Shown one piece after another: positions 50,123 through 59,803 of a DNA stretch of 64,000 nucleotides (positions within the stretch are counted from its first letter, which is position 1; every line of letters starts with the position of its first letter). The DNA comes from Hyaloraphidium curvatum SAG 235-1 (lineage: Eukaryota > Fungi > Monoblepharomycota), in contig JAIVFI010000035.1 of assembly GCA_025558095.1 (NCBI GenBank), positions 310,001 through 374,000 of the forward strand. The letters are read 5' to 3'. Under the pieces are notes generated by a model. It did not search any database. It was not told the origin of the DNA and saw nothing but the letters and a program-made list of their open reading frames with translations. The position numbers and the translations under genes are program-made.

Positions 50123-50183
50123 CGCACTCAGCGGAGCTGTGGGCGGGCAAGGGGTTTCCCAGAGTAGGACCGGGACAGAGTAG

Positions 50184-51180
50184 TTTCACACACAGCGGGA
50201 CGCGGTTCGGCTCAAGCAGACCGGCAAGCTTGGCCCGGACGAGATTGCTGCTGTACTCGCAATTCACCGAACGACGTATTTCCGTTGGATCCGCCGATGT
50301 GGGGCTCAGACCGTTCCGGACCATCCCCGCAAGGCCTTCCGCAAGGTGTCCGACGAAATGGTCCGGCACGTAGTTGACGAGGCCAAAGCTCGCGTCCGCG
50401 TGACGCAAAGGGAGCTCGCTGCTGACCTGGCGGAAAAGTTTGGCGTTTTGGTGTCGCAGCAGCATATCTCGCGGCTGCTGAAGGCCAACAGGGTCACGAG
50501 GAAGAAGCTCACCATTAAGAGCGCCGAAGCCCTGAAACAACCCGAGCGGCACCGCATGTTCCACGAGAGGGTCACTTCCTTTGATTTGGGGCGCCTAGGT
50601 GCCTTGGACGAGTCCTCATTCCAACTCAACGATCCGGGGCGCTTCGGCTACTCGGAGAAGGGGACTCCCGCCGTCGTATACCTGCCAGGGAACCGGGGCC
50701 CCAAGGTGACCCTTTGCCTCGCCATCTCACCCACTTCGCGACCCGGTAATCACACTGGAAACGTGATCTCGTACCAGATCTACAGCGGCAACATGAACAC
50801 CGAGAGGTTCTGTGCTTTTCTCAAGACTATTCGCGCCGGGGCTTGTGGGTCCGAGTCCCTGGGCGTTATCCTGGACAATGCGGGTTTCCACGGCTCTCCT
50901 CTGCGGGCAAGGAAGACCACGGACGGCACGGCAATAATAAAGAACCTCTCGGGCAAGTCGTTCCTTGCGGTCCAGGCCGTAGCAAAGGCCAACAATCTGA
51001 GCCTCATCTACCTGCGACCGAGATCGCCGGAATTTAACCCGACCGAGTACGTGTTTGCCACGATCAAGAACCTCGTGAGGCGGGACTGCCCCAGGACGGT
51101 GCCGGATCTCGTCCGGTCCATCGAGAGGGCCATTCAAATCGTCGGCCACGGCGATCTGATGGCGACGTTCCGGCACTGCT
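50184..51180 (+). CDS. IS630/Tc1-mariner DDE transposase domain (N-terminal part of a long ORF)
   Basis: HTH EIAAVLAIHRTTYFRWIRR; second HTH TQRELAADLAEKFGVLVSQQHISRLLK; catalytic LDESSF (D 50607), ILDNAGFH (D 50874), SPEFNPTEYVF (E 51045); ends TFRHC with no stop codon. Confidence 0.9.
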
Positions 51181-53370
51181 TGAAGCTAAGCGAGGCTGAG
51201 TTTGTGCGCATCGCGGAATCCGCGTCCGCCGGCAAATGTGTGGCGCGGAAGGTCACACTACAAGGTCAGATCTCTGCCTTTGCTTCTCCGGCTCCTCAGA
51301 CGTGCCCTTCCGCGATGGAGGGCGCAGCAGCGACCCAGACCGAAGCAAACGCGGCCGAGCGGCTCGCTGAAGAGGTGGACTGCCATGACGGTTGCGCATC
51401 GGGCATGCAGACCGCGCTGACTCACGACAACGCCCACTCCGAGCAGGCTCGCAACCTCGGCGTCGCCCACATCAACCCGCACCAAAAGCACACTTTGCTG
51501 ACCCTGAGGGAAGTTCTCCACGTCGATGGTTCGGCGAGGGAATTCTTTGGGCCGTGGAACGACTTCACGGACTCCGCTCAAAGGACCGCGGGCTTCGACG
51601 CTGCGGACGTCCTCGGGGGCCTCTCCAACCTCGGTGAAGCTCCTTTTGAGTTCATCTGTCAGCGGGTGGCATCGGGTCGGGGGTACAAGCTGGAGCGCGA
51701 GCTTTTCGTCGCGCGCCTCCGGAACATCGTCGCCCGGCGGCGCCGGGTCGCCCCCAGTCTGATCGGACCAGACGCACCGGCACCTCCCTTTTTCCGCCCC
51801 GCGGACGATGGCGCGGATCTGGGACCGCCGTCAGCCCCCGACGTCTCCATCTCCCAGCTGGATAACCTCGCCCGCTATGCCGACGTCCCACCGGAACTTA
51901 ACGTCTCGTTCAAGAAAGCCAGCCGCGCCGCGTTGAAACAGCTGTTTCCGCTCTCAGCCCTTGCAAACGACACCGTGCTGGACGAGAGGTTCGCCATCCT
52001 CCTATCGGGCCTTGTACGAAACGGTCGTGGACCAGAATGGCTACGTGCGCTCGCTGTTTCTCTCTGGGGACAGCTCGGCCCGGCCGGGAGGGCACGCATG
52101 GACAGCTTCGAAACATCCGAGACAGCACGTCGTGCTCTGCATTATGTTCACCAGCCCATTTCGAAGGTCTGTCGGTTGGAGTACCTCGAACGCGCGGCTT
52201 CGACCGAGTCTTTGCCAAGGAACCTTAGGCAGATACTGGAGGAAGCGTGCCGCACGCTGAAGGACCAGCAGGGCCGCTCGCTTTTTGATGCGTCGCCCGG
52301 CCTGGAGTACTTCCTTGCTTCGCTCTCCCTCCCGCAGCGATGCAAGATAGTCATGGCGGCGCGTTTGCCGGATAGTGTGGCGAGTCGCAATGCGGAAGGG
52401 CGCAAGAGATTCTTCGATTGGGCGGTGTGGAACCCGATGGCGGCCAACGAGGAGGCCCTCGCCATCGAGAATCCGGGTTCCGTTCCCGTGCTGGTGTGCA
52501 ATCTCCTGTCGAGCAGCCCCGCAATCCCAAACTGATTTTTGCCCCGGCAGCTGCTTTCGTTCCCGGGCCTTTTCCAGATGAGCCCGGGCGTACCTGGACT
52601 GGATGCAGAGGGCGATAAGCTGCTGGCAACCCTGTTCCTGAAGGCGGAGCAGCTCGGGTGGGAACACTCTTCCATGGTGACGCTGCGGCTGCTGGAGTCG
52701 GGGCCCAAGATGCGCGATTTTACCCTGGACTTGTGCGGTATGCCCGCGCTGGTGCGCGGTAGCAACCCCGAAGCACGGCAGGAGGCCGCGCGCACCGCGC
52801 TCGACGCCAAGCTCCACTTCCTCGCGGAATCCGTTGGACTGCTGGACTTCGGCCGTATCCAGAAGCGGGATTGTCCGCTCTGTTCCTTCAGTGTGCAGGT
52901 GGAAGGCGAAGTCCCGGCGAAGGCTGGGCGGCGGCGCAAGGTCGCGGCGTCGGGGATGGTGGCTGACGGAGCTGCGCGGGAGCGTGTCTATGACGCCGAG
53001 CTTCGGCTCCTCCACCACGTCAAGGGTGCGCACCTCACCTGCAGAGCGTGCCCGGGGAAGGGACATCAGTTCGACCTCGAGAGTGAGTTCCGGCAGCATG
53101 TCGAGGAGAACCACCGTGGGGCGTGAGTTGCACCGCGCTTTCCATGCATGCCTGGGACCGATGCGAAGCTGACCGCCGCCGCGGACAGTTTGGTCGCCCC
53201 AAGGAATCTCACCACGTCGTTCGGCCAGTTCATTGCCAACGCACACTACATTGTCCCGTTCGCGTCGACAAACCTCAAAGCCAACATTCCTACGGGCCTC
53301 GGCGGCTCGTCCTGCCCTTTCTGTTTCGCCGGTGGCGGGAGGCACCGGCAGGAGTGCTCTCCGAAGCGGC
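51181..53370 (+). CDS. uncharacterised cargo/linker region with zinc-finger motifs, in frame with both transposase and Fanzor
   Basis: Open frame across introns 52494-52550 and 53123-53188; CPLC...H, CRAC..F....F.QH...NH (C2H2-like) and CPFC...H...C motifs. Confidence 0.6.
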
Positions 53371-56300
53371 GGTGGGTCGCGCTCAACGGCTTCCTCGCAC
53401 TTGGCGACCCCCAGCACGAGCGATACAAGACGATGACGGAGCTGGCCGTCGAGTGGTTCCCGGCGGCCGAGGTGTGCCACCCATGGGCGCGGGGCCCGTA
53501 CGAGCAAGTCGGGCCCCTCATCACCAAGGCCTGCACCCTCGCCGCCATCTTGTTCAAGATCATCTGGACCAAGATCTTGTTGCAGATCCACAACAAAGAG
53601 CTCCCGGACCAAGACGGATCCGTCACGCAGGACATGCTCGCCAGCTTTCCCCCGTCTTACGTCGCAAAGATTGCCATCCACGCCGTGCTTGGTGCCGGCC
53701 AGATGTCCGCCGCTGTTGGAACCCGCCGCGCGGGAAAGCAGAAGTCGGCCGGGCTCGGTGCTGGGGCGAGATACTCGGGCCATTCGGGTGCGCCAGGAGT
53801 GGAGCAGCTTGTGGACGGCGGTCCGGACCTCGGAGCCAACGACGACGATCGAGACGAGGTGCTCGAGGACGTTGACTTCGAGGACGATGACGACGCGATG
53901 GCCGAGGACCAGGCCGGCGCCAAGATCTTGGCCGACTTCTTGCACGGCGAGCTGGATCAGATTGAGGACGAGGACTTGGTTACGGCTGAGGACACCCCCG
54001 ATCTCTCGCAGGTTGCTGATCAGGGCGCACCGTCCGTTCTCACCGTCGCGGAGCACAACGCAGCGGCAAAGCTTGTCCGCAAGGCGGCCGTTGCTGCGTT
54101 TGCAGAGGCGCGGGAACTTGTGGGCGAGACGTACGAAAAGCTCAGGCCGCTTTTCGTGCAGGGACCTTTGCTCCGCTATGCCGAGCAGGTCGCTTTCAAC
54201 CGAGCTCGAAGCGTGCCGCAGCGGCTGCTGACTGCGCTCAAGGTTCTCATCCGTCGCTTCCTACGCGGGGAGGTGAACGCGGGCGTCGGCCGGAGGCGGA
54301 TTGGCCCAATCCTCAGCTACGCTCTGGCAAAGCTCGGATATGGGGACGACGACTTCTCCAATTTCCCGTTCGAAAGCGCATTTGGCTGTGGTCTTGCCGA
54401 GGCCACGGAGCTCAGGGTCGGGCTGGGGAGGCTTTTCCGGCCGTTCAGAGGCTTGCAGCTGAACCGGATCGTTGACCTCCGGGATTCAAAACAGAAGCCG
54501 CCGGTGCCGGCAACCGTTTCGCAGCGGAGGGTTATCGCTCGGGTCCTGCAGGACAAGCAGGCGGGCAACCCCGTGGCGGCCGCGGTGCGAACCGTGAACC
54601 TGCCGAAGGGCAAGCCGCGCGGAAAGGTCGACGCGGAAACGGAGGCGGTGCGCAGCTACCTCCAGAACATTTGGGAGACGCTGCCGCGGGCCTCACCTGC
54701 GGAGAAGGCTGACTTGCGAAAGGTGGAGCTGCAGGAGCTGAGGGACTGGGTGGTTGCAAACCGTCTACAGCTTCGGAGCATCCCCTTCCGCTACCCGGCC
54801 GTGACCACGGCAACGATTCGGTCGACAGAGCAGAAACCCAAGTTCTGGGTCCCCGAGCACGCCGAGGACATGAACGAGGCGGCGGCGGCGGCATTGGTGG
54901 GGCAGAACCGGCCCCACTGGGAAAGCGAGAAGCTTCTGGTGGCGCGGATGAGCGAGTATGACCTCGACAAGTGTCGTTCATCCACGAACCCCGCGGACGA
55001 AGCCTTCGGCTTCCAGATGTGCTTCATCGCCCTGCACGAGCTCGAAAAGCAGGACGAGGCGCTGAAGAAGAGGGCCGCGTCCGCGGCTGCTGCACTGCCG
55101 GAACCTGGAACGGCGCGGAGGACGAGCACCGCCAGGGACCCCGATTCAACCCCAACTTTCCCAACCATTTCAACTGCTCCGGTCAAGGACAGGGAGGCTT
55201 CGAACAAGACCAGGAGGGCCCGCAACACGTGGCGGCCGCACCGCGTCGAGAAGCGGCATTACAGCAAGAATGGCTCCCCGAAGCGATGGCACGGGTTCGT
55301 CGTGAGCTTCCGTAAGCGCCGACCGCAGCCGGGGCCCGAGGGACTCGCCAAGAAGGAGACCATGGAGACGAAGCGGCGGGAGCGCAAGGCGGCCGCCGCC
55401 GCCGCGATGGCGGGGCTTGGCGCCGCCCAGACCGGCAAGGAAAAGGCAGCCTCGTGGGCGCGGCGGAAGCTTCGGGCTGCGGTCGCCGAAATCAGCTTGT
55501 CCCCCGTGACCGTCTACATCTCGGCCTCGGATCTGCCCGAGTTTTTGTCCAAGCTGGGCGTGGAGGTCGCGCCTGGCATCGACACCTCGCGCGTTGACTC
55601 GGACTACCTATTCGGCCACCTGCTCAACGGCGGCAACCAACTCGTCAACGAGGACCGGCTCTTCCGCCTCCGTCAGCAGGGCAAAGTCTCGGCAAGGGGC
55701 CATGCCGCCGCCACGCAGCCCATCTATCGTCGCACCGCGGACGTTCTGAGGTACTCCGGCGTCCGGGGCATCTATCATTGCGGCAGCACCCTGGGCATTC
55801 TTAACGAAGAAGTCTCCTTCGTGGAAAAGGTCTCGTTCCAGCAGTCGCAGCAGCAGGAGCGGCAAAACACGACACAGGACGTCGAGCCGCCAAAGCGCGC
55901 AGCGCATTCGCCAGCAGCCGCGCCGGCTCCTCCTGTTCAAACTCGGCCCACCGTCTCCGTTCCCGCCGCAGCTCATGTGCCCGCCGGTCTTGCTGCTTTC
56001 GAAGTGGATGTTTCGTTCCCTCGCGATGTTCCGATGGATCCCTACCCGCCGCTCTACACCGGTCCATGGCTGCCAAACGGCGATCCGGACCCGCCGTGCG
56101 ACATGGCTGTCTTCGATGGTGGGCATTTTGCTCAGTGACGCACGGGTTCGGAGGCTGATCGGATCCTCACTTTTCCAGGCCAGAATCGGATTTGGCATGG
56201 GGGCATGGTCTACTACCTGCAGGCGACGGCCCAAGGGGACGAATCGGTCCCGATGGATTGGGAGCCCTCTTATTGTGCCAGCAGCAACCTTAACTTCACC

Positions 56301-58550
56301 ACCATGCCTTCCGAGCCTCCGGCGGACTGCGGCATCCCCGCCGCGGTCCCGCCGGAACCCCCGCCCTTTTTCTCCTTCGTCGAACCACCAGCCTCGACTT
56401 CTCTCCCTGCCTCCATTCCCCCGGAACCGCCCCCGCATTGGGTGCACGACCCGTGCTCGTGCTGTCAAGATGCCGCCTGCAAGGCCGTGGACTGTGCGCC
56501 CAACGTGTTCGCGCCCCTGAGCTCGGGGCACAACGACCCTCCCTGCGCGACTGTCTCGCCCGGTGACTCGGTGCCCGAGACTTCTGTGCATCCATGCGCG
56601 GCCCTTCCTTTCCCCGACTTCTCGCCGCCACTTCCTTCCCCGTTCCTTTCTTGCTTCCCTCCCGAAGTCGTCGTTTGCGCGGTCGAACCGTCGCCGCCGA
56701 CGGTAACGGTCGAGGGCAAGTTCGCTGCCCCCGTACCTCCTCAGCTGGCCCCGACCCCGGTTCCGCTCCCGCCGCGTTCTGCCGAGCCGTTGCCGCGGCC
56801 CCCGGTCGACTTCAAGACTGGCATTCCCGTCTACTACCTCAGCCGCCCTGACCATGTGTCCGTGCTGGCACCCAATCTCCTGCACATGCCGACGCAGGCG
56901 GAAATGTTCGAGCGGGCCGAGCGCGGCGAGCCAGTGGAGGGCGGGGTCGTCGACGTGGATCCGAATCGCTGGTTTCTGGCTGTTGCCAACCGCCGCGTCG
57001 ACGTGCGGCTCGTTGCCAAGAGCCTGAACCCCGGGCCGAACGGACGCTACGACTTCGCCAACAGTCATCTGCCGGGGACAACGGAGCGCATCACCGTGAC
57101 CAATGCCGACGGCACCAAGTCGCACTACGTGCCGAAGCGGGCGAACCCGTCATAGGCCGACGGTTCCGTCAGCTTCGGGAGGATCGTCGGCTTCCACCTA
57201 GAGCACTCCTGCTCCGATACTAAGCGGATCGCAAGGTCTTTCGGTCCGTCGCCGCCTGCCGCTGGAGCGTGCAGACACCACCCGCTCTGGGAGCCCAAGA
57301 TCTCGGAGTTCAAGCCGCCGGCGCCCGATTCGCGCCCCAACGACGCTGCAAAGGCGGAGAAGCACGCTCGGCGCAACGTCGAACTGTTCCCGACCCCTGG
57401 CGGCTGCACGGACGAGTTTGGTGCCAAGCTGTGGGGCGAGGTCGCTGGTGCCGGCCGTGCGGGGACCCCGGCGCTGCCGGAGCTCATCCTCGGTGTTCCG
57501 GCCAAGCTCGACCGCCGCCTGTGCGGCTACGACAAGGCGGCCGCGCGTCTGAATGCCACCAAGCGGACCACCATGCTGGACGTCAACGATTGCGAGGGCA
57601 ACCCTGTGCAGAAGTCTCTCCACGATTTCGAGCGCGACCTGCCCTCTCAACGCACAACGAACAGTGCAGCCTTCTCGGACTACACGAGGGCGCTGCTGCC
57701 ACAACTCGACCGCATCCTGGACGTCTACTGTTCCGGAGAACGGAGGTGGGCAAGCCAATCCCTGTGGCAACGACTTCGCTCACGCATCCTGCAGCCTGGA
57801 TCGTGTGCGCACGATTCGCCGGCGCCGCGAGGTCCTCAGCTGGATCTGTCGCGACATGTGTCGCAACCCGTATTCGGGCAAGTACGATCCACAGACGACC
57901 ATCGCATACGGCGCCGCGCGATTCGGCCATGCGAGCAAGGGCGGCCCGGCCTCCCGGATCGTTCGCTTCAGGGCGGAGCTGGCCAAGGCCGGGATCATGG
58001 TCTTGGTCAACGAGTACCTCACGTCCCAAATGTGCAGCTGGTGCGGCAGCCGCCGTGATCATCCGACTCGCCTGACGTCCTTTCCAGCTGCAAGACCACC
58101 TATGTCGTCGGAATCCGGAACCCCGGCTCCAAGGGCGAGGTGCGCGGGGTGAAATACTGTCCCCTCTGCCGCCGCTTCTGGATGCGCGACGTGAACAGTG
58201 TGCACTCCATGGAGCACCTCTTCTGGTTCGGCCTCATCACCGGAGGGGAGCGCCCCTGGCCGTTCAGGCCGGACACCAGGAAGCCGAAGCCGCAGCCCAA
58301 GCTCCGAGCTGGGACTGGTGCAGCGCCGCGCAAGTCCGCGGGTGAGCGCGCTCGCATTCGCGACGGTCATCCCGAGCGTCATCCCGAGCTGATCCGGGAG
58401 CTCCAGGTGCCGCCACAGGCCGCAAGCGTACGGCCGCAAGCGCCGCGAATGGGTCGGTCAAGAAGCTCAAGCCGGCAAGCTGACCTGGCCGCGGAAACAG
58501 TTACAAGTTGGCGTGCCATGCACCGCGTGGGCGCCATTGCATTTGCTTGA
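53370..58550 (+). CDS. Fanzor1 (eukaryotic TnpB-like RNA-guided endonuclease), expanded and intron-containing; in-frame TAG at 57153
   Basis: Candidate RuvC-I VVDVDPN (56946-56966); LPSQRTTNSAAFSDYTRALLPQLDRILDVY; IAYGAARFGHASKG; VLVNEYLTSQMCSCC; VRGVKYCPLC; WMRDVN; GERPWPFRP. Introns at 56119-56178, 57746-57794 and 58041-58087. The 5' boundary is an estimate. Confidence 0.87.
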
Positions 58551-58660
58551 TCGAGGTGGAGTCCGTCAGGGACCGCCTTTTATTCGCAGGCTCGATGATG
58601 AACATTGCTGCTAGGCCGCAAAGGATTGCGGCACAGTGGGCACAGTAGCAGTTTCTGAGA
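58280..58660 (+). ncRNA. candidate omegaRNA (Fanzor guide scaffold) region
   Basis: Position 3' of the nuclease core, as expected for TnpB/Fanzor; hairpins GGCCG-8nt-CGGCC (58418-58435) and GCCGCAA-AGGA-TTGCGGC (58615-58632); short repeats. Extent is inferred. Confidence 0.4.
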
Positions 58661-58691
58661 GTGTCTAAGGCATCTGAGGCAGCTGGCCCGA

Positions 58692-59803
58692 ATGTCTTCG
58701 ATCTCGATCGATCCGCCGCCGTCCGAGGGCGGCGACGCGCCTTCCGAGGCGGGCAGCGTGGAGGCGCTGGGCGCGCCCCCGCCCGGCCCGCGCCCGGCCG
58801 CGTCGCCCAACCCGTGGCTGTCGGACGACTCGCTCGCCAATGCATTCGCCGACGTGCGGCCCGCCGCGGGGCCGCCGCACGGCGCGTCGCAGTCGTCGAT
58901 CGCCTCGCTGCCGGCTGACCGGCCCGCGCCGTCGCCCGCCCCGTCGTCGGACTCGCTCGTCTCGTCGGCATCGCCCCCGCGGCTGGCAGTGCTGCCCGCC
59001 CGCGCGCGCCCGCGCAGCGTGTCGCGCTCGTCGATGGTGCCGGACGGCGACAGGAAGCCCGCGCGGCAGCCCAGCGACCACGCCGCTGCCGGCGCCTTCC
59101 CCATGCCGCGGCCCGCCCGCGCGCTGTTCGACTTTGTGCTTGGCCTGCTCGGCCGCAGCAGGTCGCCGGCCGAGCAGTCGCAGCTGATCGAGCAGTCGGT
59201 CAACGCGACGATCAAGGTCTGGAGCCAGTGGAGGCAGTTCAAGTCCTTCGTCAACCAGGGCCGCATCGTCGAGACCTCGATCGCCGTCGTCATTGGCGAC
59301 TCGTTCAAGGACGTCGTGCGCAGCTTCGTCAATGACGTCCTGCTCCCGCCGATACAGTGGTTCACCGGTAGCGCTCGCAGCTGCCCCTCTCGCGCCCCGT
59401 CCCTTGACGCCCCGTCGCAGGCGGCTCCTCCTTCTCCATGCACTTTGTCCTCCGCCGCGGCCGCACCCCCGGCAAACCCTACGTCACCCTCGAGGAGGCC
59501 CGCGCCGACGGCGCCCTCGTCTTTTCCCTCTACTCCTTCGCCGACAAGCTCTTCAACTTCTTCGTCGTCGGGGTGGCGGCCTACTACCTATTGCGGAGTG
59601 GGTACCCGAACCGGCATTGGCTCCGACATCCGCTGACAGACTCGCGGTCCGATCCAGGCTTCAAGTACTTTTTCCACCGCTACATCGAGCCCGAGACCAG
59701 GGACTGCCCGTATTGCTTCTCCAGCATACCCAAGAAGGCGACTCGGTGCGCGTCGTGCACGAGCGCCGTGGAGCCGCAGACGGTGTACTACCCGCGATAT
59801 TGA
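58692..59803 (+). CDS. MscL-like large-conductance mechanosensitive channel with C-terminal zinc ribbon
   Basis: WRQFKSFVNQGRIVETSIAVVIGDSFKDVVRSFVNDVLLPPI; YVTLEEARADGA; FNFFVVG; CPYCFSSIPKKATRCASCTS; two introns. Confidence 0.82.

Follow-up and report, generated by a model that had tools for sequence, protein, structure and literature searches.

Does the window analyzed here, a 64,000-nucleotide stretch of the Hyaloraphidium curvatum SAG 235-1 genome (contig JAIVFI010000035.1, forward-strand positions 310,001 to 374,000, renumbered from 1), encode a functional nuclease of the Fanzor1 family? An initial annotation had noted what appeared to be an intact Fanzor1-type rearranged RuvC triad and zinc finger at 56946-58271. 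Our analysis indicates that window 56178-58483 is very probably the C-terminal RuvC and zinc-finger module of a Fanzor1-family protein, that this module ends a giant, spliced reading frame led by a transposase within a transposon of approximately 8.6 kb, and that it is dead in this copy. At least 10 copies of the element are present in H. curvatum (Monoblepharomycota, chytrid clade). Within the 32-Mb genome, the central nuclease exon occurs in ten copies at 99 to 100% identity, in five copies at 84% (the 84% subfamily below), and in two distant paralogs. The window DNA is GC-rich and eukaryotic. Feature coordinates are collected in Table 1.

Every motif residue named in the initial annotation was found where that annotation had placed it, and the residues it had picked as catalytic are the right ones according to both a Fanzor1 profile and the columns of a 50-sequence alignment. 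The catalytic pattern is that of a Fanzor: an Asp in DPN, a Gly in place of the RuvC-II Glu, a replacement Glu, and an Asp in RD. In Fanzors, the residue that takes the place of the RuvC-II Glu is either Gly or Pro. The replacement Glu lies six residues ahead of the first CxxC (NE-YLTSQM-C). In the 50-sequence alignment, the RuvC-I Asp was present in 35 of 36 sequences and the following Pro in all 34, with the next position Gly in 25 and Asn in 9. All 40 sequences had Gly at the canonical Glu position, all 40 had the alternative Glu, and 39 of 40 had the RuvC-III Asp. The four zinc-finger Cys columns were filled in 37 to 40 of 38 to 41 sequences.

These motifs are spread over two reading frames, and the gene must therefore be spliced. 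Contigs from three public RNA-type runs were aligned to window 52800-58700. One of these runs, X1, comes from the same organism; its RNA label is a guess, yet its contigs are spliced, with five GT..AG joints that match the frame changes needed to link the exon translations. Two of the introns (57746-57794 and 58041-58087) are also backed by the 84% subfamily, in which they carry indels of lengths not divisible by three but retain the GT, branch site, and AG. The intron of the 84% subfamily that corresponds to 58041-58087 has the same position and phase, and its spliced product reads CSKC. In addition, identical short pieces were found in two environmental poly-A RNA runs, one from freshwater and one from biofilm. 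Taken together, these results demonstrate that the gene of the element is transcribed and spliced. Splicing also bears on the zinc finger, for which the initial annotation had read CSCC...CPLC. The CPLC is present as described, whereas the unspliced DNA reads CSWC at the first knuckle and becomes CSCC after removal of the RNA-confirmed intron 58041-58087, so that the C4 zinc finger (CSCC, CPLC, 6 residues, then RD) is complete only in the spliced form. The distance from the second knuckle to RD falls in the range of 4 to 8 residues that is characteristic of Fanzors. All five RNA-supported introns (53123-58406) are very short, at 47 to 66 nt. An alternative acceptor for the last intron, at 58418, was ruled out by RNA contigs that place the intron end at 58406. 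The basic tail encoded downstream of this intron, GRKRTAASAANGSVKKLKPAS, looks like a nuclear localization signal on the basis of its sequence.

We searched for relatives of the module exon by exon. Simple searches found nothing: phmmer against PDB sequences gave no match either for single exons or for a classical relative (P0024), and a word-based homolog search with the open reading frame (ORF) of a paralog likewise returned none. Profile searches gave different results. The uninterrupted 686-amino-acid (aa) ORF of one distant paralog, L017, passed the Pfam Cas12f1-like TNB model with 32.2 bits, compared to a cut-off of 26.3. When 1.8 billion representative proteins were searched by HMMER with a profile built from the in-genome family (A2), 1067 relatives were recovered at an E value of 1e-3 or better. 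The list was led by metagenome fragments of the same subfamily and continued with many proteins of 600 to 800 aa carrying TDG, DPGR, A-x-G-x-A-x-F, dEy-TS, WNRDVNAARNI, and GERP-x-x-F. Of the relatives, 27 were aligned (A5), and this alignment was then compared to known Fanzors and matched SpuFz1 (E value of 9e-42), GtFz1 (1.6e-38), and PpFz1 (3.8e-31), all full-length, far better than it matched ApmFanzor2 (1e-11), and A5 is therefore bona fide Fanzor1.

The hidden Markov model (HMM) built from A5 recognized exon 57795-58040 with 68.2 bits (E value of 1.8e-21), exon 58088-58341 with 37.8 bits (2.9e-12), and LPSQRTTNSAAFSDYTRALLPQLDRILDVY, the helix before intron 57746-57794, with 21.2 bits (3e-7). 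It set VVDVDPNRWFLAVANRR on the columns 'vvglDPGrkdlfvavse', collinear with the other matches, as a piece that is not significant alone. When the subfamily profile was aligned to A5 with hhalign, the stretch from RuvC-II through RuvC-III gave a probability of 99.7% (E value of 9.8e-27), and beta3 plus the helices gave 96.2% (2.3e-9). A further hhalign slice placed DPN in register with DPG (E value of 8.7e-5), as did a separate alignment, A7. In a global alignment that included full-length Fanzor1 proteins, the N-terminal half was misplaced; one trimmed at the TDG strand was used instead.

The three acids of the window, D56958, E58012, and D58188 (numbered by the first base of the codon), share Fanzor1 profile columns with D383, E541, and D606 of the characterized SpuFz1 protein, which reads VVVIDPNKRD, LLDEYKTS, and WNRDM there (D777, E935, and D1000 in the numbering of the maltose-binding protein fusion) and in which these residues coordinate two Mg ions (PMC11423790). 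The family Glu was also aligned with E467 of ApmFanzor2, the Ala mutant of which is inactive (PMC10530073). The DPN sequence had been taken as a mark of divergence in the initial annotation. Active SpuFz1 itself has DPN at D383, and DPN is therefore no argument against activity.

The structure that was modeled with AlphaFold is that of paralog L017 (using alignment A7), in place of the spliced window product. The model had a mean predicted local distance difference test score (pLDDT) of 71 and a predicted template modeling score (pTM) of 0.63, and most of its core, residues 170 to 600, exceeded 85, with two short dips. In this model, D198 is at the end of beta1, G504 is at the end of beta4, E538 lies two residues after beta5, and the last long helix begins at D573, with further long helices at 420 to 487. 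The predicted fold is a RuvC topology in which the Glu has shifted from beta4 to after beta5. Its nearest solved fold was SpuFz1 (Foldseek E value of 8.5e-6; VIA Z of 13.7 over 239 residues, with a root mean square deviation of 4.1), followed by PpFz1 (Z of 12.6), Cas12j (12.3), Cas12f (approximately 10.6), and ApmFz2 and TnpB (both 9.6). The placement of the module in Fanzor1 rests on the profile matches and on this paralog fold, which agree with the Fanzor1-like nature first proposed for it. The two distant paralogs lie approximately 29 kb apart on contig C2 (L017:1090-3150 and L016:1144-3171, both on the minus strand). One has the uninterrupted 686-aa ORF, and the other was deposited as an 894-aa hypothetical protein, KAI9033139.1, which ends at an intron before RuvC-II.

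The spacing of the motifs is unusual. Approximately 334 residues separate the Asp from the Glu, as calculated from the coordinates, compared to 339 in paralog L017, because of an insertion of approximately 150 aa after RuvC beta2. This distance fails both D-x(120,160)-E (PMC10711439) and D-x(125,275)-[TS][TS] (PMC3627910), which are published Fanzor search patterns and not definitions. The zinc knuckles are separated by 22 residues here and by 22 to 23 across the subfamily, above the 12 to 18 of the published search pattern. The insertion is located between RuvC beta2 and beta3 (window 56970-57440) and is common to the whole subfamily. It contains an invariant H-x-C and, approximately 14 to 20 residues further on, a Cys that in most cases precedes x-H (EHSC...CRHH here; 57204-57281), and from this pattern it may be an extra metal-binding module.

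The initial annotation had proposed an intact module, which does not hold for this copy. The window copy contains a TAG that arose from a CA-to-AT change at 57152-53: the nine other near-identical copies read TCC AAG (Ser-Lys) at this site, and the window reads TCA TAG. The X1 transcript contigs carry C and A at 57152-53, which is the intact Ser-Lys reading. Both distant paralogs, L016 and L017, align straight across the site (GSVSFGRIVGFHLEHSC versus GLLSTGRIYGVRFEHSC), which is therefore conserved coding sequence rather than an intron. A candidate intron at 57130-57270 that would have hidden the TAG was ruled out on these grounds and by the Ser-Lys reading of the other copies. Since the TAG falls between RuvC-I and RuvC-II, any product of the window copy would be without two of the three acids. 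The window copy has a second lesion, the loss of approximately 143 bp beside its left terminus, the ATG of the frame included; in full copies this ATG is present, 22 nt ahead of the point that corresponds to 50201. With a private stop codon and its start codon lost through the left-end deletion, the window copy is a pseudogene. The nuclease part is without a stop in every other copy.

Several observations weigh against the reading of the module as a Fanzor1 nuclease that is dead in this copy. The L017 model is approximately 30 to 40% identical to the window protein and so shows the fold of a paralog. In the PDB, the subfamily profile alone found ApmFanzor2 (E value of 2.5e-4) ahead of GtFz1 (0.45). 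HMMs of the Fanzor1 N terminus and of the subfamily WED strand recognized no WED/'TDG' or REC1 region ahead of RuvC-I in the element. The fold of the 3' end of the element was no better than those of shuffled sequences (z of -1.3). Finally, the TAG is known from one assembly and may be an assembly error. Fanzor1 proteins are marked by a 'TDG' strand in the WED domain and by REC insertions with kinked REC2 helices. To this strand align the residues (T/S/Y/L)(D/N)G of the paralogs and relatives, with TNV in one relative, and the long helices of the L017 model at 420 to 487 were noted in the same comparison.

We also considered whether the module, while conserved, might not cut at all and might instead serve for RNA-guided DNA binding or regulation within a fusion protein, like nuclease-dead derivatives of TnpB or Cas12. 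The fusion with a transposase and with a long middle part of no known kind, the large insertion in the RuvC domain, the failure to find a recognizable REC1/WED upstream in the element, and the lack of in vitro cleavage by CrFNuc, another intron-bearing Fanzor1 (PMC10530073), all speak for such a role. Nuclease-dead derivatives usually lose the acids, however, whereas here four paralog lineages, as well as environmental relatives, have retained all three acids and all four Cys. Furthermore, when the two subfamilies were compared, the ratio of nonsynonymous to synonymous substitution rates (dN/dS) was 0.08 in the exon that encodes the Gly, the Glu, and the first Cys; the exons of RuvC-III and RuvC-I gave 0.25 and 0.31, respectively. 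All three values are rough because dS is saturated. These results demonstrate that the nuclease exons have evolved under purifying selection, and we consider a non-cutting module improbable.

Somewhat less probable again is a functional window copy, its triad intact and its TAG either an assembly or sequencing error or read through. An adjacent double substitution seen in a single assembly is odd, the transcript contigs show the intact reading only, and the window copy has no private frameshift. However, TGA and TAG act as ordinary stops in this gene family, and the 143-bp left-end deletion with the start codon and the two bases lost at the right end are independent damage, which fits a decaying copy. 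Least probable of all is a Fanzor2 or prokaryote-type TnpB relative instead of a Fanzor1, for although the relocated Glu is common to the Fanzor1, Fanzor2, and TnpB-type groups (PMC10711439) and ApmFanzor2 is the best direct PDB match of the subfamily profile, that match is limited to the zinc-finger/RuvC-III stretch, the profile-profile and HMM matches to verified Fanzor1 span beta3, the helices, RuvC-II, and RuvC-III, a strand that aligns to the Fanzor1 'TDG' strand is present in the paralogs, the closest folds of the paralog model are Fanzor1, and the carrier is a Tc1/IS630 element and not IS607. The initial annotation had treated the relocated Glu as the signature of Fanzor1. It is shared by Fanzor1, Fanzor2, and pro-Fanzor/TnpB2 proteins (PMC10711439, PMC10530073), and because it occurs in all Fanzors and some TnpBs, it is no Fanzor1 marker by itself.

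We next turn to the frame in which the Fanzor1 module lies. Frame 0 holds just four stops over 50202-57745. Two are in RNA-proven introns, one is the private TAG at 57153, and the remaining one is at 52533. From at least 53189 onward, in-frame splicing is supported by the RNA contigs, and the junction at 52533 is outside this region. From the reading frames, a giant spliced ORF is predicted to open with an IS630/Tc1 transposase and to have the nuclease as its C terminus, the junction at 52533 being part of the prediction. The stop at 52533-52535 is the sole frame-0 stop without RNA coverage between the transposase and the rest. Candidate in-frame GT..AG introns of 57 to 96 nt with plausible splice sites span it, for example 52494-52550. 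Our tentative proposal, which we judge to fall short of an even chance, is that in intact copies the Fanzor1 module is part of one polypeptide of approximately 2,600 aa with the Tc1/IS630 transposase, and that it represents a new subfamily with a His/Cys RuvC insertion of approximately 150 aa and without a classical REC1. If a single polypeptide includes the transposase, cut-and-paste transposition and RNA-guided cleavage would be physically coupled.

Comparison of the window copy with nine others by blastn showed at least 99.6% identity among the ten copies over window 50201-58664, with five of the copies compared without approximately 500 bp equivalent to 55800-56296. Because of this high identity, the element looks recently mobile. 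Full copies reach approximately 158 bp further left than the window copy, to GTTTCACACACAGG, and their right end is GTGTAGC followed by TA. In the window copy, the left end consists of the terminal GTTTCACACACAG and five filler bases (50196-50200), after which the element resumes approximately 143 bp further in, and at the right end GTGTAGC has been shortened to GTGTC. Internal deletions were present in three of the six left ends examined, all beginning directly after the terminal GTTTCACACACA(GG). The window copy has lost approximately 143 bp in this way and has the five filler bases, and the C11 and C28 copies have lost 22 and 7 bp, respectively; the deletion sites are window 50183-50200, L023:4236-4250, and L025:4230-4257. 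These recurrent deletions look like end-joining scars at a single repeated break point. Two further copies are altered internally: the C15 copy (L024) has a 1-nt deletion upstream of the nuclease, equivalent to window 53324, that causes a frameshift, and the C7 copy (L005/L022) lacks 171 bp of the Pro-rich linker, equivalent to 56312-56482, with the frame preserved.

At the 3' non-coding end of the element, a block at 58545-58588 (GCTTGATCGAGGTGGAGTCCG...) is kept with the 84% subfamily better than much of the coding sequence, and the 55 nt that follow (58589-58643) are missing from that subfamily. This pattern of conservation makes the block a candidate for the scaffold core of a guide RNA. 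One X1 contig runs past the right end, from 58664 onward, into AGCTAGCGATGGCC..., the flank of the C28 copy, so that for this copy at least, transcription continues into host DNA.

Table 1. Features of the transposon copy and its nuclease module, in window coordinates
Feature	Position	Strand	Evidence or remark
Whole transposon copy	50183..58665	+	TA flanks at 50181-82 and 58666-67; blastn and junction alignments against other copies
IS630/Tc1-type DDE transposase part, frame 0	50346..52535	+	Pfam DDE_3 PF13358, 56.2 bits versus cut-off of 28.6
Intron, 66 nt	53123-53188	+	X1 spliced contigs
Intron, 60 nt, removes stop at 56136	~56118-56177	+	X1 spliced contigs
Exon: Pro-rich linker, RuvC-I (Asp 56958-60), ~150-aa RuvC insertion, beta3, long helices	56178..57745	+	RNA joints 56117>56178, 57743>57793
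VVDVDPN	56946-56966 (Asp codon 56958-60)	+	Window translation
Premature TAG, window copy only (CA>AT at 57152-53)	57153..57155	+	Copy alignments; X1 contigs; paralogs
Intron, 49 nt, GT..AG	57746..57794	+	X1 spliced contig; 84% subfamily comparison
Exon: RuvC-II strand IAYG, alternative catalytic Glu, first zinc-finger Cys (58033-35)	57795..58040	+	Fanzor1 HMM
IAYG	57901-57912 (Gly 57910-12 at canonical RuvC-II Glu position)	+	Window translation
VNEYLTS	58006-58026 (Glu 58012-14)	+	Window translation
Intron, 47 nt, interrupts first CxxC knuckle	58041..58087	+	X1 spliced contig; 84% subfamily comparison
Exon: second knuckle CPLC, RuvC-III RDVN, GERPWPF tail motif	58088..58341	+	Fanzor1 HMM
CPLC	58158-58169	+	Window translation
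RDVN	58185-58196 (Asp 58188-90)	+	Window translation
RPWPF	58251-58265	+	Window translation
Intron, 65 nt	58342..58406	+	X1 spliced contig
Last coding exon: basic tail GRKRTAASAANGSVKKLKPAS, stop TGA 58481-83	58407..58483	+	Frame after RNA-supported splice
3' non-coding end of element	58484..58665	+	Expected place of guide (omega) RNA

Among the characterized Fanzors, SpuFz1 from Spizellomyces punctatus (PDB 8GKH, 9CEU-9CEZ), whose host likewise belongs to the chytrid clade (chytridiomyceta), offers the closest comparison. Both proteins have DPN in RuvC-I, Gly at the old Glu position, a Glu six residues before a CxxC, RD after the second CxxC, and a G-x-RP-x-x-F tail, and their similarity is detectable via profiles only. 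They differ in that the Asp-Glu spacing of SpuFz1 is approximately 157 residues versus approximately 334 in the window protein, and in that SpuFz1 is a separate protein of approximately 640 aa whereas the window module is the tail of a transposase fusion with a predicted junction at 52533. The 22-residue zinc-knuckle linker and the failure to find a recognizable REC1/WED also set the window protein apart from SpuFz1. PpFz1 has a RuvC insertion of its own under a different name (FRI). ApmFz, the Fanzor2 of Acanthamoeba polyphaga mimivirus (PDB 9B0L), has an NEYLT...C motif nearly identical to that of the window. This compact protein of approximately 500 aa has an IS607-type setting, its likeness is limited to the zinc-finger/RuvC-III part, and its match to the model is weaker (Z of 9.6). 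The carrier resembles the Mariner/Tc1 elements in which Fanzor1 proteins are found (PMC3627910; 'Fanzor1c' in PMC10530073), which are TA-flanked transposons that also encode a DDE transposase. In those elements, the transposase and the Fanzor are separate proteins (PMC3627910, PMC10530073), whereas here they share one frame. The conserved Gly and Glu were noted by Bao and Jurka in 2013 (PMC3627910) and by Jiang et al. in 2023 (PMC10530073).

By analogy with SpuFz1, the module of intact copies would bind RNA from the 3' end of the element and would cut guide-matching DNA, with its D/E/D residues holding two Mg ions, as an RNA-guided double-strand nuclease. Such a guided nuclease would presumably serve the maintenance or spread of the element. 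What is new here is a divergent member of the known Fanzor1 family. Its catalytic arrangement is that of a textbook Fanzor, and the finding therefore adds a member and not a principle. As a natural null allele the window copy is useful, yet it is not the one to clone. A divergent Fanzor1 subfamily is documented in an early-diverging fungus, and if its transposase is indeed encoded in frame, the element would provide a natural single-chain transposase-nuclease for testing how Fanzors serve their transposons.

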